This document shows, in pieces, positions 40,901 to 56,103 of a DNA stretch of 64,000 bases; positions within the stretch are counted from its first letter, which is position 1; each line of letters starts with the position of its first letter. This stretch comes from Cyanophora paradoxa CCMP329 (taxonomy: Eukaryota; Plantae; Glaucophyta), in NCBI GenBank assembly GCA_004431415.1, contig QPMI01000642.1:62001-126000 (forward strand). The letters are read 5' to 3'. The notes beneath the pieces were generated by a model. The model saw only the letters and a list, made by a program, of their open reading frames with translations, had not been told where the DNA came from and made no database searches. The position numbers were made by a program, and so were the translations under genes.

Positions 40901-42314
40901 GTCAGAAGCAGCCCGAAGCTGCGGGGAGATCAGGATTTGTTTTTGAGAGGGGGGGGGGGGGGGGGGAAGGAAGGGGGGGAAGCAGTCACCGGGCGTCCAT
41001 CTCGGTACCCCCGTAGACGAGGAAGCCGTCCTTGTCGCCGGCTCCGAGGAGCCCGGCCAGCTCGCGGCTCGACCGCAGCAGCGCCGCCGCCTGGCCGAGA
41101 GTTCAGAGGGGGGGGGGGAGGAGCTCGGGGGTACGGGCGGACGTGGGGGGCGACGGCGAGCTTGCCCGGGGGCGCGATGGCGAGGGCGCCGGCGAGGGCG
41201 TCCAGCGGCTCGCCTACGAGGGGCACCTCCCAGCGGCCCCGGTGGCCCCCGACCTGGGCGCGCCCCGTCCCCGTCGGCCCGGGCCCCGGGCGCCCCTCGG
41301 CGCCCCCCGGGGCCCCGGCGGACCTTGAGGAGGCTCACGTGGCCGGCGGTGAGGGCGCAGTGGAGCCGCAGCCCGTCCGCCTCCACGTCCAGCAGCTCCC
41401 TGCCCGCCCGGATTCGAACCCGGGCCGCGCGGGGCGGGGCGGGGCGGGGCGGGGCGGGGCGGGGGCACCGGGCGAGACGGAAGGCGCGGAGGGCGGCGGC
41501 GGGAAGGGACGCGGCGTCGGCGGCCGGCAGCAGCACCAGCACCGCGTCGCCCTGCGGCGCCGTGGGCGCCGGCGGCGGCGCGCGGCCGGCGCGGGGCGCA
41601 CCAGGAAGCGCATGACGTCGGCCCCGAAGCGCCGACACGTCCGCAGGACCTCCCTGGCCCCGCTGCCGCCTCAGCGCGGCGCGGCGAGGCGCGGCGACGC
41701 GCGGGGCGCACCGGAACATGCCGTTGAGCCTCCGAGAGAACTCGTCTGCGGGGCGGTGAGCGGCGCGCGCCGGCGCCTCGCCTGCGGGCAGGGCGGGGGC
41801 GAGTACCTGTCCCGCGCAGTGCGGCCTCGGTGGGGTCCGCGTCGGCGAGGGGCTCGGCCCCGAGGCCCCGCCCCTCCAGCAGCGCCCCGGCGAGCTTCAC
41901 CGAGCCCCTGCGCGCCCCGGCCGCGTTGAGCTGCGCGGCTTGCGGCGAGCGTCGGGGCAGCGCCGCGCACGCAATGTCTGCGAGGAGCACGGCGCCGAAG
42001 ACCGGGAACTGCTGCGGCCCGTCGTCCTCCCCTTCGGTGCGGAGCTCGCCGCTAAGTACGCGCGAGATGACGGAGTCTGGGAGGAACAGCTCCGGTCTGT
42101 CGCGCAGCTGCCTGGAAAGCGCTGCGGTCGATAGCTTCCTCAAGGACATGCTCCTGATGCTCTTCCGCGCGGCGCCGAACTGGAAAATTTGCGGCGCGGG
42201 CGAACCGCCCTCGGCAGCGGCCGCGGGCGGGGCGCCGCGCACGGCGGAGTCCATCTCCAGACTCGGCCGCCCGCTCTCTCCCGCTATTGCGAGCGGCGGC
42301 GCGAGTGACGCCAT
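31959..42314 (-). CDS. Soluble adenylate cyclase type 10-like protein (two class III cyclase domains + STAND/AAA NTPase + helical C-terminus), many exons
   Basis: C1: GAVLLADIA|GSVKL..FGADVMRFL|GDAVLVL..LRLHCALTAG..WEVPLVGEPL. C2: LRVITALFVQL..LFKDDK..VGIATGRVFCGLLGTDLRCELNVIGD|SVNMAARLM..PIPVK|GK. P-loop LLHGEAGCGKS; Walker B LVVEDLHALDSAS; GNAYSVQEL. The 3' end is approximate. Confidence 0.88.
37080..37255. repeat. Pure G/C low-complexity tract (GGGGC/GGGCGGC units) inside an enlarged cyclase intron
   Basis: About 175 bp composed almost only of ggggc/gggc/ggc units. Confidence 0.85.
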
Positions 42315-43027
42315 GGCCGCCGGTGGTGCGAGTTACGGGCGGCTGAGCTTAGCTGCCTCCTGCGCATGCATGGGGTGAGTTGGGTGTCGTCGCGCCTTGC
42401 GACTGCCAAGTTGAGCTCGAGGCGGCGCGGTAGCACGACGCCGCGAGCTGCAGCTGCAGCTGGTTGTAGTTGCACTTGAAGGAGGGGGGGCCCCGGGCCC
42501 CGGGGGGGTGGACGTGATGAAATTTAACAATTAAAGCTATTATAATGTATATATATAATTTGCATTAATTGCATGTCTGCATGCATGCAATATATATGAT
42601 CGACTCTTCAAGCATGCAATCATATATATATGTCTCGTCTGCAACGCCGGCTCAGAGCGATCGACCTGCGCGCAGTTCGATATATATATATATCGATCGC
42701 GATCGATTCGATATAATTTTAATGTTAAAATGCGAGAATTATGTCTTAATCCTCTTACCCCTTTCTTATCTAACGTCTACCCCTTTATCTGACGTCTACC
42801 CCCCGCTAATCCCGGCTCCCCTGACTCCAGCCTACCCCACATCCGAGTCTCCTCCCCACCAGGGAAAGAGCCATGGCCACCATCCCCACCAAGAAAGAGC
42901 CATCGATATCGATCCCGCAAGTAGTATACGACGACATGCAAGCGCTACTACCTGCCGGGCGGCCCCACAAGCTCGGAGCTCGTGGGCGGCCAGGCAGACC
43001 GCGCCCGGCGGCCCCCGGCGTGCTCAT

Positions 43028-43533
43028 TAGAGCTGTGCTCGCTGGGGGGGGCCGGGCCCAGCGGCCGCTGAAGCCCGGCGAGCGGCGCCTGTCGCTGGCC
43101 CGTCGCTGAGCTGGGGGTACCGCCAAAACCTGAAGAAAAACTGCTGGAAACCGACCGAAAACCTATCTGTTCCGTTTAGTTTATTTCGTACAAGCTTCTA
43201 AGACGCAAATGCAGATTTAATGCTTGGTTCCGCGAGCCATGCGTCAATTTCTGCGGGATAGAGGCCAGCTGCAGGCTGCTTTTAGGCGAAGCGGACTCCC
43301 CGGGAGCGCCTGAATGCTCGAAAACAGTCGAAATTTAGCAAGATTGCTCGGCCACGCCGAGTCGTCGCCGACCTACGTCGACCATCAGATGAGAAAAAAG
43401 CGGGATGGAGCTTTTTTTGGCGCCTGTCAGCCATAAAAAACGATGTGCGAGGAGGCGTCGCTGGCGGAAAACGCCAAGCGTAGCGGCCGCTGGAACCTCG
43501 CGAGCGAAGCGACAACCAGCGACCACAGCCCTA
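43028..43533 (+). mobile_element. hAT-type MITE, left copy (506 bp)
   Basis: 18-bp imperfect TIR TAGAGCTGTGCTCGCTGG / CCAGCGACCACAGCCCTA. Near-identical to 53066-53561. Its own flanks differ (GTGCTCAT left, GTCCGAAC right). Confidence 0.92.
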
Positions 43534-43813
43534 GTCCGAACACGGTCTGCTGCACATGTACAGCGGCACTACAGCCACTGAGCCTGCATGGCAGAGCGTT
43601 TGGCCCAGACTCCCGGAGTCCGCCGCCCAGTGGCCCGGCGGCGGCGGGGCGCCGGCCCGGCGGCCGGCGCCGGCGCCTCTAATATGGCCCGCTATAGCGC
43701 TAGGCTAAATAATACTGTAGAACTAGAAATATTAAGTGGGCTGCATATTTATAGTACTTAAAAAGTTTTGGGCAATTTCCTAAATATTACACGCCCCCAG
43801 TGCTGGAGTAGAC

Positions 43814-44464
43814 TAGAGGCTGTGGCCGGTAATTCACCAAAACAAAACATTTCGTAAATATTTCTCGCCTGCTAAAGCCGAGATTTCTCAGGGGTACTCC
43901 TTTCTTCGCCATACAAAAGCCCTGCGAAGACCGACCTACCAATAGCTAAAAAAAAGCTTAGGGCCGCGGGGATGAACCGGCATAAGCGAAGACCGACCTA
44001 CCAATGCTACCATTGCTACCAATAGCTAAAAAAAAGCTTAGGGCCGCGGCCCGCGGGGCTGAACCGGTATACATGCTAGTACTGCCACTGTACTGGCCGC
44101 CGGACCGCGGGCCGCGGCCCGGCGGGCCCGCTAGCGCGCGGCCCGGCTGAACCGGTGAAAAGCGGCCGGGCCGCCGGGCCGCGGCAAGTTCACTAGCCTA
44201 GTACCGTAGCTGGCCCTGCTAGCCTGGCAGTGGCAACTAGTATAAACCAATAGGCTAGCTATATAATATATTAATTTGCGATCGCGAGGACGTCGACGTT
44301 CCGGGCAACTTCCGGCCCCATTACACCGAAATCTGACGGACGACTCCGAAAGCTAGCGCCCGATAGGCCAGCTTGACGTCATTGAACGGTTAGAAAAAAG
44401 CGAATTCGACAAGGCAATTTCGAAAGCATTTTTTTTTTTGGTGAATTACCGGCCACAGTCTCTA
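43814..44464. mobile_element. Nested TIR element (~650 bp, non-coding)
   Basis: TAGAGGCTGTGGCCGGTAATTCACCAAAA ... TTTTGGTGAATTACCGGCCACAGTCTCTA (29-bp TIR, 1 mismatch). The IR extends imperfectly outward (CAGTGCTGG). Internal duplication at 43925-44048. TSD ambiguous (TA or GAC). Confidence 0.75.
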
Positions 44465-45305
44465 GACACCAGCACTGCGGGGGCTGCCCAGGGGGCATAG
44501 AGACAAAATAGCAAAATAACTAAGACAAGAGCACGAAGAAAGATAAGACAAAGAGCCAAAATCGACAATAAAAAAGGAAAGACACAGAGCTCGAGACAGA
44601 TCGATTGCGAGAAGAGACGATAAATCGAGCAGATCTAGGGACAGAGGATAACTGACACGAAGAAGAGCCAGAGCTAGAGGATAACTGACACGAAGAAGAG
44701 CCAGAGCTAGAGATACCATCAATATCAGAAGGAATTACATCACTAAGAAGCGGGGGACAAAATTGAGAAAGATAAATAACAGGAAGAAGACAAGTAAGAG
44801 GAACAACAAGACGACATGGAGGCGGAGGCGAAGCAGGACGATGCGAAAGGGCAGAGCTACGGCACGAGGTCGAGGAGGACACAGGAGGCGGAGCAGGCGG
44901 ATCAAGAGCAGGCAAAAGAACAGTCAAAGGAATCACTAAAGCCGGCCGGGGTCGAGGCGGGCAATCGAACTGCAAACGACGGCGAACAACAGGTCGAGCA
45001 CGAGGACTATAGCTAGTATTGAAACTAACTCTAGCATCAACACTACGATCAGAATCCGAACCAGACCGAACTAAACTAGAAGACGAAGAAGTACGCCGGC
45101 GCCGGCGGGATACGATCGCGACCAGCGAAGCAGAAGACAAGGACAAAGGCGGTAGTCCGGTATCAAGAACAAAGGCCGGAGGGTCCGGCCCGGCAAACCG
45201 CCGGGGGGAAGTAGAAGGAGCCGCAGGCTCCTTCTACTTCCGAAAGCAACTTCGTCATGATCAGAGATGGACTCAGATGGTTAATTAGGCCAGCTCCGCG
45301 AGGCT

Positions 45306-45680
45306 CGTCACCTGTTTCTTACCGGCAAAGTCCCCCGGCGACTAGTGTAAAACAAATTACAAAGTGGTCCGGTTAGACTCCGGTAAGTATATACGTATAT
45401 ATATATACCGCCCAACGCGCGTCGGAATTAAGCATGCGAAAACTATTAAAAAAGTACATTTTCCTTCAGTGAAGTTGACGTGTGTCGTCGACAACTGGCA
45501 TGAATATATATTCCTTCAGTGAAGTTGACGTGTGTCGTCGACAACTGGCATGAATATATATTCCGTCACCTGTTTCTTACCGGCAAAGTCCCCCGGCGAC
45601 TAGTGTAAAACAAATTACAAAGTGGTCCGGTTAGACTCCGGTAAGTTTATACGTATATATATATACCGGCCAACGCGCGT
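45306..45680 (+). repeat. 117-bp direct repeat pair enclosing a 50-bp tandem duplication
   Basis: 45306-45422 is nearly identical to 45564-45680; 45461-45510 equals 45511-45560. Confidence 0.88.
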
Positions 45681-46237
45681 TCAAGAATTATTGGATGACA
45701 CGAGCTGTCAGCTTGAGTGATCCGATCGCTAAACACATTAAATTGGGGCAGTTGTACGATCCACAGGATGCACCAACAGACGTGGCATTCGTAACGTCAA
45801 CCAATGCGGATCACAGATCTTTCATAACGTCATTGCAACACAGTGGCCAGAGATCCTTATCATCAATGCCGGAGATCGAACAATGCCAAATCGTCTTAAA
45901 CAACTTCCTCTTCATGTGCAGGTGTGCTCATTTGATTGCCGCAAACATGCTAGACCTTTGACATTTGTTTTGCAATAAATAGATACCAGGTTTGTTTTGC
46001 AATAAATAGATACCGCTAGCGGCGATCGCTCTTGTCCCACTTGGACATTTCAATGCATTCGTGATGATGCAGTGCGGCACCAATGCTCCTTTTGTGTACC
46101 GCTATGACGATATGCGTGATTCCGGAACGGACGGATGCCTCTACCCAGTTGTTCCAACCTTCGCAGCGCTGAATGATTCCTTGTCGCCTAGCGAATTCAG
46201 CAATGTACATTTCCTTTTCTTTGTGCGCCAAGCTTAA
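45679..46237 (+). pseudogene. 3' fragment of a USP/peptidase C19-like gene (His box), probably disrupted
   Basis: Reads ..CGSQIFHNVIATQWPEILIIN..LPLHVQ | ..LAAIALVPLGHFNAFVMMQ..VYRYDDM..VHFLFFVRQA*. A 24-bp duplication at 45964-46014 disturbs the acceptor or frame. No Cys box found. Confidence 0.5.
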
Positions 46238-46914
46238 CGACAGCAAGCTCGATTCGTACGATTTTTTAACTTACTCTATGCTCGACTTTCAAAGCTTTCT
46301 TAGGCTTACTGTCTGTTGCTCGATCGCTCAAGCAGTGTCACATGCCAGTGTGTCCTGATTTCGGCTCCATTTTAAATTTAGTCTGATCCTCCACTTCCAA
46401 AGCTTATCTCGAATTTTCGCTGTATGCCATCTTATAAAATAAGTGACTTGCACATTCACTTCTGCCTGCTCTTTTAATAATGCCGTCAATAGGTGGGGGG
46501 GTGCGGGGGGGCTTGCCCCCCTGCTTGTGCATATACTATTGATCCGCGCATGCGCCGCGGCGTCGGCGCGCGGAAAGTTGTCCGGGACTGTGCAGGATCG
46601 AATTTTTGACATCGGGCACCTTCCTGCACTGTTCCGGCTCCGAAAACCGGATATCTGGAGTGCGCAGGCCCTGCTATGTCTATGCGCGCCAGTACGCATC
46701 GAATGCGCGCGTCGGGGGACCGGCCGGAAACGGCAGGATCAAACTTTCGGCCGACTCTTCGGACTGGAGCGTCGGCGGCGGCCAAAATCGAGGTTGCCGG
46801 AGTGCGCGCGCCCTCCGCTCTCATTCTGCATTGCTCTGGGGCGTCTGTGGCGGGCTTTCGTCGCGGGACCGGGCGGGACCGGGTCCCACTTTTTGGAGTT
46901 TCGCGATCGAGGCG

Positions 46915-47224
46915 GGGTATAAATACCAGAATTGATCCTGGAGGGAAATTCGATTTTCGCGCGACGCCCAGGGGGGAGCGATCGAAAATTTGAAAAATTT
47001 GATTGGTGATTTGGACGTGACTGATTCGTGACCATAACGTTACACGGACGTTACATTGATGTCACGTCAGGGTATAAATACCAGAATTGATCCTGGAGGG
47101 AAATTCGATTTTCGCGCGACGCCCAGGGGGGAGCGATCGAAAATTTGAAAAATTTGATTGGTGATTTGGACGTGACTGATTCGTGACCATAACGTTACAC
47201 GGACGTTACATTGATGTCACGTCA
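46915..47224 (+). repeat. Exact 155-bp tandem duplication
   Basis: GGGTATAAATACCAGAATTGATCC...GATGTCACGTCA at 46915-47069 and 47070-47224. Confidence 0.92.
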
Positions 47225-50200
47225 TTACGGAGGTTCGTGGAGGTTCAGCGAAAAAAACGCCTGTTCAAATCCGACAATAATTTCGGGAGTTGGCCATCGA
47301 CCTACGGAAGAGGCTTCGCCCGACCTCGAAAACGGCCTCATAGAAAAATTTTGGCTGAAGCGAGGGAACGGGAAGCAAGGGGGGGAAGACCTTCGGTCTT
47401 CTTTTCCCCCCTTGCAATTATACCGTTGCTGTACATGTTCCGGGCCATTTTGTTGCCCTTGGAATTCGCGCCCGGCCCGGCCTTAAGCTTGACTCCCTTG
47501 AGATCTACCGCTGGTCCGCTGCCCCGGCCTGCCCTTAAGCTTCTCCGAGCTCGAGGGCTGCCCAGGCCTGCCCTTGGTTACCGTAATACAGAATAGTAAG
47601 GTACGCACTTTATCATGTCGACCCCAAATTATGTTGCCGAAAAGTGACAGAACGACATAATTTGTGGGCGTCATATTTCGCACAGAGAAGGGCTGGATTT
47701 TATAACGACATAAATTTGCCTGTCATAATATTGTGTGTTACGGTAGAATAGCAAGCAATGGGCTCTTAAGCTTGAATGGATGGCCTTGGAGGCTCGTTTA
47801 AAAACAAAGGTCGAAAAACCTTTTTTCGTAAGATGCATATTAGCCGATTCGTTTTTGACTTTTTTAGTCCGCGCCGGCGGCGCCGGCAAACTTCACATTC
47901 AAAAGTAACTTAGCAAAGGCCCCATCGCCCAATACTGGAAAGCTGGACGTACTAGTATCTGGTGTGCGAACTTCGGACCCGGGAATTCGAAGTTGTCGGT
48001 TACCGGTACCGTCGGTACGACTCCCGACAGTCTCCCATACGAGACCGTACGACTTGTCCATGCTGTCATGATCATCCAATGATCATCGGGTCGACTCGCC
48101 GGCGAGTCGGCGGCGACGACTTGAGTTTGCATGCACTACCCGGTGACCACATGAATGCAGTGCCAATTGCAATATGCATGTGCCCGGCGGCCATCACTGC
48201 TATGCAGCCCGGAGCCTATGCACACTGCACAGCGATATCGATATCAATAGATTCGATGCACTCCGCAGACAGGACCGCAGTTACTGAGTCGGACCGCAGA
48301 GTCCGCACTGACTCCGCAGTGCCCCGGTGTGCCCGCAGAGTCGGCGCAGACTGGGGGCCGCAGTCTGGCCCGCAGACAGCTGCAGTCACCACAGTGCATT
48401 GTGCACGTGCGCAAATCGAATCATTGCAGATTGGGGCCCCGAGCGGCCGAGCCCAGTCGCCGGCCCGACTCGGCGACGCCGGGCCGTCGACGTCGGGGCG
48501 CCGGCGCCGGCGGGGCCGGCCGGCCCGGGCCGGGCCCGGCCCTGCGGCCACGCCGGCCAGGCTGCGGGGCTAGCTGGCTGCGGCCCCTGCCCGCGGCCGG
48601 GGCTCATATGCATGATCAACGATCGGATTTTAATTTTAAAGCCTTTGAAGTTCAACGGTTTATATTAAGCGCTAGCCGGCGGCGCCGGCGCCGGCCGTCA
48701 GTTTGATTGGTGAGGTACCGTACCGGTAGTTACCAGTAGGTCCAGTACAGGCTTACAGCACTGAGTCGTGCCACTGACAGACACTGGCACTGTAAAGTCA
48801 GTGACACTCAGTGTAGACTGCTAATCATGTCTTCTTAACTTGCCAATCAGATTGAATCAGTGGCAATCAGTGTACGTACTGGTGCCGAATCACTGCCGAT
48901 CCGATGATCATGACTCAGTGACTCGTGCGGCGTGCCACGGTGATTCGATTTACGAAGTTCACTGAGTCATGATCATCCGCCGCGGGCGGCGGACCGGATG
49001 ATCGCACTCGATGATTCGCGATCGCGAATTGTCAGTTTTCCCACCCATGATCCGCCGAGTCAGAGACTCGAATCGTCAGAAAGTAACTAGCTCGGGACCG
49101 GAGCCTCGGGACTCGGGAGTCAAAAGACCGTCGGACTCGGAACTCTTCGGGAACTTGTGACTCAGTGACGTGCACGAGGGTCGACGTCGGCCGCGGTCGC
49201 GGCCGATTCGACGCATGCCGGACCATAGCTAGAGCCGGTCGCGATTGCGACCGGCAATGGCCCGGCATGCATGGCAAATTATAATTATTAGCAATGATAG
49301 CATTGCACTCTGTAAACGTAGGAATTTTCGTTGAGACTTAATGTCGACAAATCCTGAAAATCAGGCCGACGACAGCATCATATTTTCGTTAGCCCCGCGA
49401 CTTTGCCATCGACGGGTCAGCCCCTCCGCCGCTGCAGTACTAGTCTGCTGCAGCCTGCATGCTGTAGCTGGTACGTATACGACTACCAATATCATGATCC
49501 AAAAACAGCCTGAATGCGCATGCGCAGCCGCGAATCGATCTTCGTTGGCGTAACCGATGATCAACAACACGTGATCTCGAAGCTTCGAGACGACGTCGAC
49601 GTCGACAGGCTAGCGCTCGAGTCACCGTGGCTCTGCGATTGCCAAAGTTGCATATGCATACGGCGATTGTACGCGTACGCACATATAGAGCACTTTATAT
49701 AATCAATTGCAACGTTGGCCTTGGGTGCTGCTGCAGCTGCTGCTATAAGCTTAAGACTCTGGGAGGCCCTGGGTGCTGCAGCAGTTACTAATTATATAAG
49801 TTCGCTGCTGCAGCCCGCTGCAGCAGCTCCGAATCCTGAATGCATCCGAATTAATCGAAATCGTCTCAGCTGTGCCGCGACGGCAATCGCGAGGCCGACC
49901 CCCTTGAGCTCGTTACAGTTCCGTCATCGACCACGATCGCGACTCTGGTCTCGATGACAACGTCGGCAGATCTAGAGGACCGCGGAATTGCCGCATTCCT
50001 TCAGCAGCAGCTGCAGGAAGCCGTCGCGTCCTCAGCCGCTCTGGATCTCGCGCCGCCCCAGGCCACTGACACCGGTCGCGAGCCTCACAACGGCGCTGCC
50101 GGCACGCGCCTCGATTTCAGCGCCGGCGCCAGCCTACGCGGCGCTAGCTTGATCCCCTTCGGCATGGGCTTCCGGTACGGGCTCATGGCTGCCCTTTCAG

Positions 50201-53065
50201 ACCGCGCCTCCACTTCTTCGGCCTCGACTGCCGTCTTGCCTCCGACGGATCCGGATCGGGAACGAGCTGCAGCCCCTCACCTCCCAGTCTGCAGCTGCCT
50301 CTCGGCTTGCGCATGCGGATTTGCGAGTCCCGATCGGGAATCGGACGACGAAGGAGATCGAGACCTTGACGGTCGACTTTCCGACGAACCGCGGCAACGT
50401 TAACGCGCCTGCGAGAAGCAGCTTCCACTGAGCCTCGCCGGGGCAGCTCGAGCTCGAGCTCGACGTTACACTGCAGCTGGTACATGCCACAGTGCGATCG
50501 GCGCTCCGCATCCGGATTCGAGCTCTTCCGCGGCTTCCAGGACCGTCGGGCTTCATCGAAGATCTAGGTGCGTTCACTGGAAGCGCGATCGCGAGATACA
50601 CATTTTCGAATGTTATTGTTCACGCACGCACGCTGATAGCACGTCTTGTGATGTCCCTTGCATTAATTGCACGGCCCGGCGGCAGGCTTGCAGACAATCC
50701 ACAAGTTCACGTCTTCTAATCGATCCCCGTTCGGAAGATATCATCGATCGGTACAAGGATTCAGTCCGGCGAAAGAACGTCCTGCAGCTGTGCGACCACG
50801 AGACACAGACACGGGGCAATCGGTGTCACACATTAAGCTGCCAGCCTGGCAGGCTGTGACAGCTTCGTCGGTCCAGGACTCATGATCAGCCGTCGTTGAT
50901 CATGAGCCCTCGACGGCTCCAAAGACCCTTCGCACGATTGCTCCGCGTCGACGTCGGCATGTGCATCCGCTCAGCAGCTCTGGCATGAATTATAGTGCGG
51001 AACTTTGCTTAAGCCTGTTCTAATCATAATCACGCCGTGACGCTGCCTTCACCGCACCACAACCATTAACATATTTGGTCAGGAAACTCGATGACTATAG
51101 CTACATTTCATTTCCGGGATCCCCTTCCGACGAAGCGATCGTGCCTCCGATTATATTCACCGATGCTTGCCATTGAAGACTGGTAAATATATGCTTGCCA
51201 TGCATGCTAGCTTGTAAGGCAGCCGCAATCTGACAGTTATATGTGCACGTAGACGATGCGATCGATTCGACACGCGACCCGCGGTCTCCAGTGCCCCATA
51301 GACATGCATATGCATCGCAGTTTGAAGCTTGCCACTTCAAGGCTTGAGAATAGAAAGGCCAGGAGGCTCGCCGGCATACCCTTCGAGTTCGTCTACGTAC
51401 GTAGATCTACAAATACATTGTTGGCTGATTAAGCGCAAACACATGGATGCATATGGCTGATTAAGCACTATTCTTCTCTCGCCGGGACGTCGACGTCAAC
51501 AGGCCGATAGGGCGGGAGCTTAGCTTCGGGCCGCCGGGCTCCAGCGCAGTATACGTAAAGTCCGGCAGCGCCTCCCGCGCCCGCCCCTCTGCACGCGCCT
51601 GTGTGCCGGCGCCGGCGCCGGCGCGCCCAAGTCAAGACGAGGTTAGACCCCAGAGCGCTGAATCCTAGCGGCGGCGCCGCGGCGCCGGCAGGCTCAGGGA
51701 GAGTTAAATCAGGAGATCTAGACTTTCTATGGTTTACTTTTAATTTAATGCTTATGAATGCTAACGACCAGCATCGCCACCGTAGTACTAGCTATAGGCT
51801 AGTAGGCCTAGTTAAGCGCTAGCTAGCAGGGCGCCACACTTCGCAGTGATTCGAATTCGCGAACTCCAGCGCCAGGGTGGGAGCCCTAGCGCCAGCGCCA
51901 GCTGCAGCATGCGCACCCGGAGGGCAGCGAGGGCGGCCGCCCTGCCCTCGGGCCCCCGCGCCTCGTCCAGCGCCGCCTGCGCATGCGCATGGGCAGCGGG
52001 CTTTAACGTTCGTGGCCATGGCCAGACCTGCAGGTTTGAGGCTCAGGGCAGACCTCGAGGTAGGCGCCGAGGTGCGCGAACTGCATGGCGACGACCCGCG
52101 CCGCGGCCGCCGCGTGGTCGATCGAGCTCGGGCCGGGGCCGGGGCCGGCCACCCCCAGCAGAGCCTGCGGGGCCGGTTGCAATCACGATATCGATGAAGC
52201 GATCAGAGTTTTATCCGGATCCAGAGGCACGTTATATTATTGCAAGGGGGGACGAAGACCGTCGGACCGAAGGGCTTCTCCCAGCTTGCAAGTTGCCTCC
52301 CGTTCCCTCGCTTCAGCCAAAATTTTCTATGAGGCCGTTTGCGAGGTCCAGTATGCAACAAAAATGAGGCTTATTCGCGTTCCGATTGGCTCGGTGGACC
52401 GGTCAGCCTTCGACTTTCGAGCGTCAAACTCGAGCTCGCGAGAGCTTTCTCGAACTCGCGAAAAGTGGTTTTCGAGGGGAAAACCAACTTTTCTCTCATA
52501 CTAAGTTATAACTTATTACTTATGACGCATGCGGACACCCGTAAAAAAACTCAGTTCTCACGGAACGGCCGAGCCAAAAATCTTCGGTAACTTGATTGAG
52601 GTCAGAAAACTTACCTAAGGGTTGTGTCAACGCATATGAGAACACAGTGTGGTATACGGTATATAATTATATATAACACCAGATTAAGGAACTGAAATTT
52701 TTACTTTCCGCGTTAATATTAGGTACCGCGCTTATTCTCGAAATCCACTGCGAGAACGCCAGATACATTACCCCCAAGTGAAACTAAATTCAAAATGTCA
52801 GCGCGTTAATTTAATAAAAAAACGGCAATTTTGATTTTGCCCCCCCCCGCGGATCGATATCGATCGATCGAAGATCAGTTTAGGTTTTAAAGAAATTTTC
52901 ATGCATGAAGTTCGCAGTCGCAGTGCCTACGCGCGTTCCACGCGCGTGCCGCGCGCGCGCGTCACGGCGTACGTACCGGTACGGACCGGGTCGGACCCGG
53001 GACCCGTACGGTTACTACGGTACGTGCCACGGTGCGCCGCCACGGACCACGGTGCGCGTCGTGAC

Positions 53066-53561
53066 TAGAGCTGTGCTCCCTGGGGGGGGCCGGGCCCAGC
53101 GGCCGCTGAAGCCCGGCGAGCGGCGCCTGTCGCTGGCCCGTCGCTGAGCTGGGGGTACCGCCAAAACCTGAAGAAAAACTGCTGAAAACCGACCGAAAAC
53201 CTATCTGTTCCGTTTAGTTCATTTCGTACAAGCTTTTAAGACGCAAATGCAGATTTAATGCTTGGTTCCGCGAGCCATGCGTCAATTTCTGCGGGATAGA
53301 GGCCAGCTGCAGGCTGCTTTTGGGCGAAGCGGAGCGCCTGGATGCTCGAAAACAGTCGAAATTTAGCAAGATTGCTCGGCCACGCCGAGTCGTCGCCGAC
53401 CTACGTCGACCATCAGATGAGAAAAAAGCGGGATGGAGCTTTTTTTGGCGCCTGTCAGCCATAAAAAACGCTGAGCGAGGAGGCGTCGCTGGCGGAAAAC
53501 GCCAAGCGTAGCGGCCGCTGGAACCTCGCGAGCGAAGCGACAACCAGCGACCACAGCCCTA
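53066..53561 (+). mobile_element. hAT-type MITE, right copy (496 bp)
   Basis: Same TIRs. Differs from the left copy by about 8 substitutions and a 10-bp indel (by eye). Flanks are GTCGTGAC (left) and GTGCTCAT (right). Confidence 0.92.
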
Positions 53562-53720
53562 GTGCTCATACGTCGCGCACGTCAGCTATAGTCAAGGCAC
53601 TGGCCCGGCCCGATCATTTCGAATTCTGCAATTCGATTTCCTACGGATAGACGCTCGTGACTTGCAGCGCGTTGATATCGATATCGATCGACAAATAGCA
53701 GTACTAGTGCACCGGTCGAT

Positions 53721-56103
53721 ATGGGCGGCACATCGTCGAAGATCTCATCGTGGAGGGACGAGGCTTCTTGCGTGGCGAAGGAAACCCCGTTGTACTCTTT
53801 AAAGGTAGCGCGGTACGCAGTGGAGAGCGACTTGCTGAATGCTTGCTTGGCAAAGGGCGCAACGTTCGCAAGCGCCAGCGGCGACACCACCTTGCCTTGC
53901 ACACAGTGGTCCGCAACCGGCCGCCGCCTCGTGACGCCCGCGGCCTCCTCACGCGCACGCCGCCTCCCGCGTAGCCCGGCGGTGACGAAAGTGGAGACTT
54001 TCAGCGCACCGGACTGCAGCGGCACGTCCCTCTTCACCGCAACGTACAAGGGGGAAGCGCTCTCGGACCAGGACCTCTTCACCTCGTGCGGCCGCGGGGC
54101 CGCCCTCGGCAAAGTGGGCACCGCGTACTACAAGGCGGCAGCGGGCGACATGGGCGGCACTGAGGCCGCCTGCACCAAGTGGTGCGCCCGCCGCCGCGCC
54201 CCGGCCCGGCACCGGCGGCCGGCGCCCTGGGGGGCCGCGCGCGGCGCGCGCGAGGCCGACGCGCGGCAGCCCGCCGGTGACGGGCGTCTTTACGTACACC
54301 GACGGCGGCTGCACGAACAAAGGGCCCGCCTCGTACTACTACGGGGCCCTCGCGAAGGGCGCCCCCGCGCTCTCCGCCGACGAGGCCTGCGACGCGAAGG
54401 GCGCCCTCGCCTTCTCCGCCAAGGCCTTCGCCGGCGAGAGCGCCACCCCGATCGTCGGCTGTACCCCCTGGTTCCCGGACCCCGGTCCCCCCGGTCGACG
54501 TCGCGGGGCGTCCCCCCTTACCGCGGCGCGCGCAGCCCGGCGCGGAGCATCGTGCGGGCGTACCCGAGCGGAAACTGCACGGCGGGGGCGCGGGACGCGG
54601 TGCAGGCCGCGAAGGATGCGCGGCTGTCGGCGCTCCTGGAGAAGAGCCTCGGGATGAGGGGGCTGGAGGAGGTGCGGGTCGCGCAGGACGCGGCCCTCCA
54701 AATGGCGCGCATCGTCGCGGCGTACGGGGGCGTGGAGGCGCTGCAGCAGGCGAGGGGCGCCGCCGTGTCCAAGCCCGAGGGCAGGACCGCCGCAGACGAG
54801 GCCGCGATCAAGGCCTACGACGACTTCACAGCCGCGGTGCGCCCGGGCCGGCGGGGCGGCCCTTGGGCGGGGGCGGCCCGCCGCGGCGCTGACTCGCGCG
54901 GCGCGGCGCGGCGGGGCGGGCGGGGGCAGTCCGTGCGGCACGAGGGCTTGACGGGCGGCCTGACGGAGGCGGAGGTGGACGAGGCTTTCCGGCTGGCGCT
55001 GGACGTGGTGGACGACCCGTACTACGTGAGCGCGACGGAGCGGGTCGTGGACGGGAAGCCGGCCGCCGTCCTCGCCGCCGTGAAGGAGCTCTGCGAGGGC
55101 GGCTTCAAGTACTTCCTCGGCTGGCGCGACGGCGACTCCTCTGCCCTCTCCAACGCCCTCTACGACACCGACACCCCCTTCGACGCCACTTTCTCCGTCG
55201 CCAAAGGCACCGACCTCGGCCAGGAGATGGAGTGCAGCCCGTGGTGCGTGCCGCCCGCGCCCCGCGCCCGCGCCCGCGCCCGCGCTGAGCCGCGCCGGTC
55301 GCTGCAGCCGCACGCACAAGAAGACGGTGGAATGCATCCGCAACGGCACGAAGGTGTTCGATGCGCAATCGGCAGACGAGTGCGCACTCCCGCCCCCCCC
55401 CCCCCCCCCCCCACCCCACCCCACCCCCCCCACCCCCCCCCTCCCCTCCCCCCTTACATCCCCCTCCCCCTCTCCTCCTCCTCCCTCGCCTCCCCTCGTA
55501 TCCCCCCGCGCCCTGGCCGGGTCCGACTCGCGGCGCGCAGGTGCAGGAGCCTGTACGATGGCGTGGATGAGAACGAAGCGTATTTCTCGGGTTTGGAGGT
55601 CGAATCCCTTACCGTGCGTGCACGCGCCTCGCGCGCCCAGTTATAGGACCGGACCGAGCCGCGGCGGCGGCGGCGTCCGACCGGCGGCTGGGGTGGGGGC
55701 AGATCGAAACCGTCTGCACGCCCTGGGGCGGCTGCGAGGAGTTTAGGGAGCAGTTGTGGGTTTTGCCGCCCTGGCTCGGCCAGATCTCGCGCGTGGACGA
55801 AGCGAGGCAGGTGCGCACGCGCGGCCGGCGCGATCGCGAGCTGGCGCCGCGCCGTGCGCCCCGGCCCGACGCGGCGCGCGGGCCCCGCAGGAGGCGGAGG
55901 GGGGGAGGAGCTGGAGGCCGGCCTCGAGCTGGAGGAGGCCGTCCTCGCCGCCGACCTCCAGCTCGCCGCCTGCTGCGCCCCGGTGCGCCCCCGCCCCCGC
56001 CCCCGCCCCCGCCCCCGAGTCGCCCCCGCTGTGCGGGCGAGCCGCGTCCCCTCCCCCCGGCGCCCAGGACGCGGAGCTGGCGGAGGGGTTGCTCCCGCAG
56101 TGA
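53721..56103 (+). CDS. Uncharacterised protein with ~5 Cys-containing ~60-aa repeats and a possible N-myristoylation motif, multi-exon
   Basis: Starts MGGTSS. Repeats end LPCTQW, AACTKx, VGCTPW, MECSPx, TVCTPW. The last exons need a 1-nt shift in a G7 run near 55899-55905, probably a homopolymer error. Confidence 0.6.

Follow-up and report, generated by a model that had tools for sequence, protein, structure and literature searches.

In a 64,000-nucleotide stretch of the genome of the glaucophyte alga Cyanophora paradoxa CCMP329 (contig QPMI01000642.1, positions 62,001 to 126,000; hereafter the window), we identified a 10,534-bp unit in which two nearly identical elements of about 500 bp, lying in the same orientation, bracket about 9.5 kb of DNA. 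A single 8-bp target-site duplication (TSD) encloses the whole unit, and neither element has a TSD of its own. The bordering elements have the appearance of MITEs, or miniature inverted-repeat transposable elements, of the hAT superfamily. With moderate confidence, we interpret the unit as a hAT-type macrotransposon, that is, a block of MITE, cargo and MITE that was moved as one by a hAT transposase supplied in trans.

One duplication encloses both elements and the DNA between them

The unit and its immediate flanks are laid out as follows, with positions counted from the first letter of the window.

43020-43027, plus strand: left copy of the TSD, GTGCTCAT, adjoining the left end of MITE1 exactly
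43028-43533, plus strand: MITE1, 506-bp candidate non-autonomous hAT-type element, with 18-bp terminal inverted repeats (TIRs) matching at 16/18 positions and subterminal GTCGCTG heptamers
43293-43302, plus strand: 10-bp near-palindromic insertion, ACTCCCCGGG, present in MITE1 only (pairwise alignment)
43534-43541, plus strand: GTCCGAAC, putative orphan half of the original TSD of MITE1, fitting GTnnnnAC
43534-53065, no strand: cargo, 9,532 bp of non-coding, repeat-rich DNA, 47-61% G+C
53058-53065, plus strand: GTCGTGAC, putative orphan half of the original TSD of MITE2, fitting GTnnnnAC
53066-53561, plus strand: MITE2, 496 bp, a direct copy of MITE1, with TIRs matching at 15/18 positions
53562-53569, plus strand: right copy of the TSD, GTGCTCAT, adjoining the right end of MITE2

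Read from left to right, the order is thus GTGCTCAT, MITE1, GTCCGAAC, the remaining cargo, GTCGTGAC, MITE2 and GTGCTCAT. The two outer octamers are identical at all eight positions and differ at the ninth. The two flanks of each MITE, by contrast, agree at only four of eight positions, so that neither element has an individual TSD, exactly as a first-pass annotation of the window had reported. The duplication at the outer ends of the unit has the 8-bp length that characterizes hAT insertions.

To judge how readily such a match might arise by chance, we took the probabilities empirically from the octamers of the window. Two window octamers are identical with a probability of 7.5e-5; the value is 5.8e-4 if both fit nTnnnnAn and 4.1e-3 if both fit GTnnnnAY. 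The first of these patterns is the target consensus of Hermes and of hAT elements, and many Hermes sites read GTnnnnAC or GTnnnnAT (PMC2803484). All three distinct flank octamers of the unit fit the hAT consensus nTnnnnAn, which is found in 3.2% of window octamers, and also the narrower GTnnnnAY, found in 0.40%, which bears out the earlier observation that each of them reads GTnnnnA(C/T). Because both inner octamers fit the hAT target consensus, they look like genuine orphan halves of former TSDs. Moreover, a blind scan of all 64 kb for 8-bp direct repeats combined with TIRs returned the 10,534-bp unit as its sole match outside G+C-rich simple sequence.

Since the outer octamer is exact, individual TSDs are missing and the probability of a chance match is small (7.5e-5 to 4.1e-3), the 10,534-bp unit most simply arrived as one block, and the proposal of the first-pass annotation that it behaves as a single insertion is well founded. 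Provided that the duplication formed by the outer octamers is genuine, both the cargo and the equivalent of one MITE must have entered between the halves of a single target.

The bordering elements fit the hAT superfamily

Global alignment of MITE1 with MITE2 gave 488 identical bases among 496 aligned (98.4%), with eight substitutions and one 10-bp indel; the identity is 96.5% when gaps are counted (BLAST). The first-pass annotation had described two direct elements of about 500 bp with ~98% identity and 18-bp TIRs at 43028-43533 and 53066-53561, and these coordinates proved exact. The TIRs read TAGAGCTGTGCTCGCTGG at the left end and, read inward, TAGGGCTGTGGTCGCTGG at the right end; between the outer ends of the whole unit they match at 16 of 18 positions. 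Similarity between the two copies stops at the ends of the TIRs, apart from a GT that is common to the flank octamers.

The TIRs of hAT elements start with the consensus (C/T)A(A/G)NG. The termini of both MITEs, TAGAG and TAGGG, follow this consensus and open TIRs of 18 bp. Near the ends of the MITEs, the heptamer GTCGCTG occurs four times against 0.17 expected, and these repeats resemble the subterminal motifs to which hAT transposases bind, making them putative binding sites. Because termini, 8-bp duplication and target consensus all fit, and the subterminal heptamers may do so as well, we assign the bordering elements to hAT as probable non-autonomous members, in agreement with the first-pass annotation. 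The open reading frames (ORFs) within them are short, and the longest, of 109 amino acids, had no relative in a protein search of the protein collection. Scans of metagenome, viral and prokaryote collections with the TIR pattern returned 131 loci, all of them single chance matches without extended similarity.

Independent contigs support the left junction and an exchange of flanks

We compared the region 42300-48299 with contigs of public sequencing runs; all 24 runs are from one organism and have similar word shares, and the figures given here and below are among the matches listed. The left junction, consisting of the flank and the first 28 nt of MITE1, is found unchanged in contigs from four of these runs (2012, 2019 and 2024). 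The unique-flank contigs end 28 nt into MITE1 in all four runs, as contigs should where a dispersed repeat begins, and variant contigs of the element exist, which together mark MITE1 as a member of a dispersed, multi-copy family. Summed contig depth over MITE1 is ~10-35 times that of the flank, a rough guide only, as it counts contigs and not reads. At 43090, 43111, 43133 and 43134, both MITEs carry letters that are in the minority among the family contigs listed. Because these minority letters are common to both, we place MITE1 and MITE2 in one subfamily, and the sharing fits MITE neighbours that arose by local hopping.

The contigs are also informative about the other side of MITE1, where a repeat that we call R begins.

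43534-43748, no strand: repeat R, the first 215 bp of the cargo, with ~6-7 close paralogs elsewhere that lack the MITE

Two contigs of 497 nt (runs X1 and X19) match the locus from 43748 down to 43533 with no substitutions and eight gap letters, and then run on for 289 nt that match neither MITE1 nor the left flank. The paralogous contigs stop resembling the locus exactly at 43533/43534, that is, at the last base of MITE1. As the paralogs of R lack the MITE and diverge at its last base, the right junction of MITE1 is a true insertion junction inside a copy of R. At this locus the left portion of R is absent, with the unique left flank in its place. Such an exchange of flanks, observed here for the right side of MITE1 only, served to identify Tam3L as a macrotransposon at the White Cap (Wc) locus of maize (10.1101/082677).

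Proposed macrotransposition and competing routes to the same structure

Further features connect the unit with the macrotransposons of maize. It presents one left and one right outer end, as macrotransposons there require of elements in direct orientation, and its outer junctions share one duplication while the individual elements lack their own, as reported for Wc (10.1101/082677). Macrotransposition, which also accounts for the natural Wc locus (10.1101/082677), is established by experiment for maize Ac/Ds: Ac macrotransposons of 10.3 kb and 28 kb are able to excise and to reinsert (PMC9910405). The 10,534 bp of the present unit fall within this documented size range.

Under a macrotransposition model, two copies of the ~500-bp non-autonomous hAT element would have inserted separately, in the same orientation and ~9.5 kb apart, into donor DNA that was repeat-rich and non-coding, and their original TSDs would have been GTCCGAAC and GTCGTGAC. 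A hAT transposase supplied in trans would have brought together one copy's left end and the other copy's right end, and would either have excised the complete 10,534-bp block or have made a copy of it. The block would then have inserted at GTGCTCAT, ~150 bp upstream of a plus-strand ORF and within a short divergent intergenic region, duplicating the 8-bp target. We infer the action of the transposase, the existence of the donor and the order of these events from the observed arrangement. Macrotransposition ranks above two other routes because it has the fewest preconditions and fits the subfamily letters shared by the two MITEs.

Several points nevertheless weigh against it. The case is that of a single locus; a donor site, the footprint of an excision, an allele without the unit and further copies of it were not seen in the window, contigs and collections covered. 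The 8-bp duplication of this MITE family is known from this unit alone, no solo copy having been seen, and contig support covers only the left of the four junctions. Pfam searches of the cargo ORFs yielded no hAT transposase that could be matched to the ends of the unit. Finally, homologous integration and a composite insertion made with reversed transposon ends both predict the same local structure.

In the case of homologous integration, a solo MITE with its own GTGCTCAT duplication would have resided at the locus, and a MITE-bearing circle, released from another site when two direct MITEs recombined there, would have integrated into it by a single crossover. In a variant of this route, a break in the resident MITE would have been repaired by copying a MITE-cargo-MITE template. 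In neither version would a transposase act on the large unit. Either version predicts exactly the flanks that we observed, as the first-pass annotation had correctly recognized when it named the integration of a circle into a resident MITE as an alternative. About 500 bp at 98% identity were available for recombination, other copies of the MITE family could have served as partners, and paralogs of the cargo show that such DNA is present elsewhere in several copies. We nonetheless consider this route unlikely, although it deserves serious weight. It needs every precondition of macrotransposition, namely a donor with two direct MITEs, plus a resident MITE at the target, and it relies on a rare circle integration or on an ectopic conversion tract of 9.5 kb; nor does it require that the two local MITEs share subfamily letters. 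The first-pass annotation thus gave two routes to the same structure and missed a third, in which two adjacent donor MITEs use their facing ends. In that process, insertion into an unreplicated site causes re-replication of DNA outside the pair, and repair joins two formerly separate donor segments between transposon ends under one 8-bp duplication, yielding a composite insertion. Insertions of this kind are documented for maize Ac/fAc, with lengths to ~19 kb, competent ends and an 8-bp duplication (PMC4270019), and the flanks that they predict are those seen here. An internal repair junction would not stand out in a patchwork cargo, and we identified none. As the process takes more steps than simple macrotransposition and has been shown in maize only, we regard it as rather improbable for the present unit.

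If the assembly is at fault, the real locus would be a solo MITE with its GTGCTCAT duplication, through which the assembler threaded a MITE-flanked segment from another locus. The outer junctions would look no different with a solo MITE, the independent contigs confirm only the left one, and short-word contigs cannot span a 500-bp repeat. Such an artefact, however, requires a pair of false joins, the second compensating for the first and leading back to where it started, and a 0.5-kb repeat is far below the length of long reads, assuming that the sequence is that of the published PacBio-built C. paradoxa assembly (PMC6704402). Because the two MITEs differ at eight sites and by one indel, they are not one collapsed sequence, and we consider an artefact very improbable. 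Still less credible is a coincidence, in which the TSDs of two MITEs that inserted independently were lost or scrambled and the outer octamers match by accident through the family's preference for GTnnnnAY. That strong preference raises the probability of a match to ~4e-3, and the window contains GTGCTCAT at four places where 1.2 would be expected, the remaining two copies adjoining no element end. Even the inflated probability is small, and coincidence needs independent loss of the TSD at both elements, yet all four flanks fit the consensus perfectly. A further model starts from a solo MITE nicked by transposase at its two ends, the subsequent capture of filler DNA leading to duplication of the MITE; it is disfavoured because its inner flanks would be random, yet both fit GTnnnnAC.

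Relation to known systems and significance

The closest counterparts are the hAT macrotransposons of maize, which include Ac/Ds pairs (Huang and Dooner, 2008, as cited in PMC4270019 and PMC9910405) as well as the pair of Tam3L elements from which the Wc locus arose (10.1101/082677). In these, as in the C. paradoxa unit, two hAT elements of the same family lie in direct orientation, their outer ends, one left and one right, act jointly, the DNA between them travels with them, and the outer junctions share an 8-bp duplication that the bordering element lacks individually. The sizes of the maize examples reach tens of kilobases. The borders of the present unit differ in being ~500-bp, MITE-like, non-autonomous copies instead of Ac, fAc or the 4.5-kb Tam3L. 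It also differs in its cargo without genes, in its glaucophyte host and in being known from the sequence of one locus. The composite insertions of Ac/fAc likewise have transposon ends as borders, a single 8-bp duplication and ordinary genomic DNA enclosed; their cargo comes from outside the donor pair and contains a repair junction (PMC4270019).

Other systems are alike in outline only. Bacterial composite transposons, including those bounded by MITEs, also have two short inverted-repeat copies that bracket a cargo under one duplication (PMC6382973). The MITE-bounded cases comprise MITEs flanking class 1 integrons and a MITE-297 pair bracketing 76 kb, with the transposase acting in trans (PMC6382973). 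Their transposase families and hosts are unrelated to those considered here, and classical bacterial composites have as their borders insertion sequences, which carry the gene for their own transposase. The borders of the C. paradoxa unit contain only short ORFs, one of which was searched without a match. Because its borders encode no transposase and its superfamily is unrelated, we place the unit outside the bacterial class, to which it is related by analogy only. The label of a bacterial-style composite given by the first-pass annotation therefore overstated a single event whose eukaryotic precedent is the maize hAT macrotransposon (10.1101/082677, PMC9910405, PMC4270019). In Pack-MULEs and Pack-MITEs, too, foreign DNA travels between transposon ends, but those are single elements with the captured fragments inside one pair of TIRs (PMC2817404). 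The unit is not of this type, because two complete elements, each with both TIRs, bracket its cargo.

The unit is accordingly a new example of a known phenomenon, a rare event documented in maize, and not a new kind of system; what is new is the glaucophyte host lineage and the MITE-sized borders. If our interpretation is correct, it represents a natural macrotransposon outside land plants with borders no larger than a MITE, and alternative transposition by hAT elements would be an old and general property of the superfamily instead of a peculiarity of maize. With no genes in the cargo, nothing points to an adaptive transfer of cargo, and the earlier description of a MITE-driven cargo-shuttling system reaches too far from one event that carried non-coding repeat DNA. 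A broader scenario, in which paired hAT ends repeatedly move large blocks in the glaucophyte genome and thereby shuttle repeats, genes and even integrated viruses, strikes us as doubtful.

Content of the cargo

In the cargo, dispersed repeats and retroposons of high copy number form a patchwork in which no gene or RNA is detectable. Its G+C content of 47-61% compares with 77-81% in the flanking stretches at 40-42 kb and 54-55 kb. No Pfam family was found among 20 cargo ORFs of at least 80 amino acids, the only hit being one sub-threshold chance match, which upholds the statement of the first-pass annotation that no transposase lies inside. An exact look-up of 10 cargo ORFs gave no match, a tRNA search of the cargo detected none, and an Rfam search detected no family.

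Repeat S, at 44020-45422, has ~7-9 paralogs in the contigs, and the interval 45832-46523 has ~4-6. Over 44300-45300 and 46500-47500, contig depth is higher than in the flank by factors of hundreds to thousands. In the least repeated pieces it is ~1-2.5 times the flank value, but these values disagree between runs and provide no basis for copy number. Across 43533-46523, paralogs of the cargo differ from the locus by 8, 32, 10 and 24 gap letters as against 0-7 substitutions, their divergence being dominated by small indels.

A further insertion is nested within repeat S.

44429-45240, minus strand: retroposon-like nested insertion of 812 bp with poly(A), a terminal hairpin and an 8-bp duplication, CGAAAGCA

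Its minus-strand tail is A11, and exactly at the other end (45208-45240) lies a perfect 15-bp stem with a 3-nt loop. Paralogous contigs (~7-9 times flank depth) lack it and join 44420 to 45241 with eight shared letters. Its family is abundant, the bins covering 44300-45299 standing at hundreds to thousands of times flank depth. A 66-bp inverted repeat (43794-43859 and 44417-44482) was considered as the TIRs of a second hAT MITE of 690 bp and rejected; because paralogs lack 44429-45240, its arms are the 3′ ends of two oppositely oriented copies of the retroposon family. The repeat contains TAGAGRCTGTGG, which by chance looks like the terminus of a hAT MITE. We likewise rejected inverted copies of ~105 bp (47322-47426 and 52229-52348, 4.9 kb apart) as the TIRs of a 5-kb element, as no duplication flanks them. 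Each of these arms is a small high-copy repeat with its own internal G/C hairpin, and the family stands at ~370 times flank depth.

Two local repeats were also noted in the cargo. At 46915-47224, a 155-bp unit is perfectly duplicated in tandem (100% identity), and at 45306-45680 two 117-bp direct repeats (98%) surround two 50-bp tandem units. The latter arrangement is a local duplication, given that paralogous contigs lack 254 nt and join 45410 to 45665.

Genomic context of the insertion

The unit lies between the starts of two divergent ORFs.

42315-53720, no strand: 11,406-bp interval between the ATG at 42314 (minus strand) and the ATG at 53721 (plus strand)

Subtracting the unit and one copy of the TSD leaves 864 bp, close to the mean intergenic distance of 770 bp in the C. 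paradoxa genome (PMC6704402). A single event would thus have enlarged the shared upstream region thirteen-fold in a genome whose genes are otherwise ~770 bp apart, and it may have altered how two genes are regulated. The G+C content rises at the starts of the two flanking ORFs, gene starts here being based on ORFs only. Neither flanking ORF belongs to a Pfam family or had a match in exact look-ups, and the first exon-like part of the right-hand ORF matched nothing in the protein collection or in Pfam. This ORF (53721-54200, plus strand) starts with MGGTSSK and comprises two modules of ~50 amino acids, each of which has several spaced cysteines and ends in C-x2-W. Where the upstream region of the left gene has its edge, positions 42470-42510 form a run of nested G/C palindromes, GGGGGGGCCCCGGGCCCCGGGGGGG, which are similar to the loose contig ends of the CCCCGGGG type at 46652-46911.

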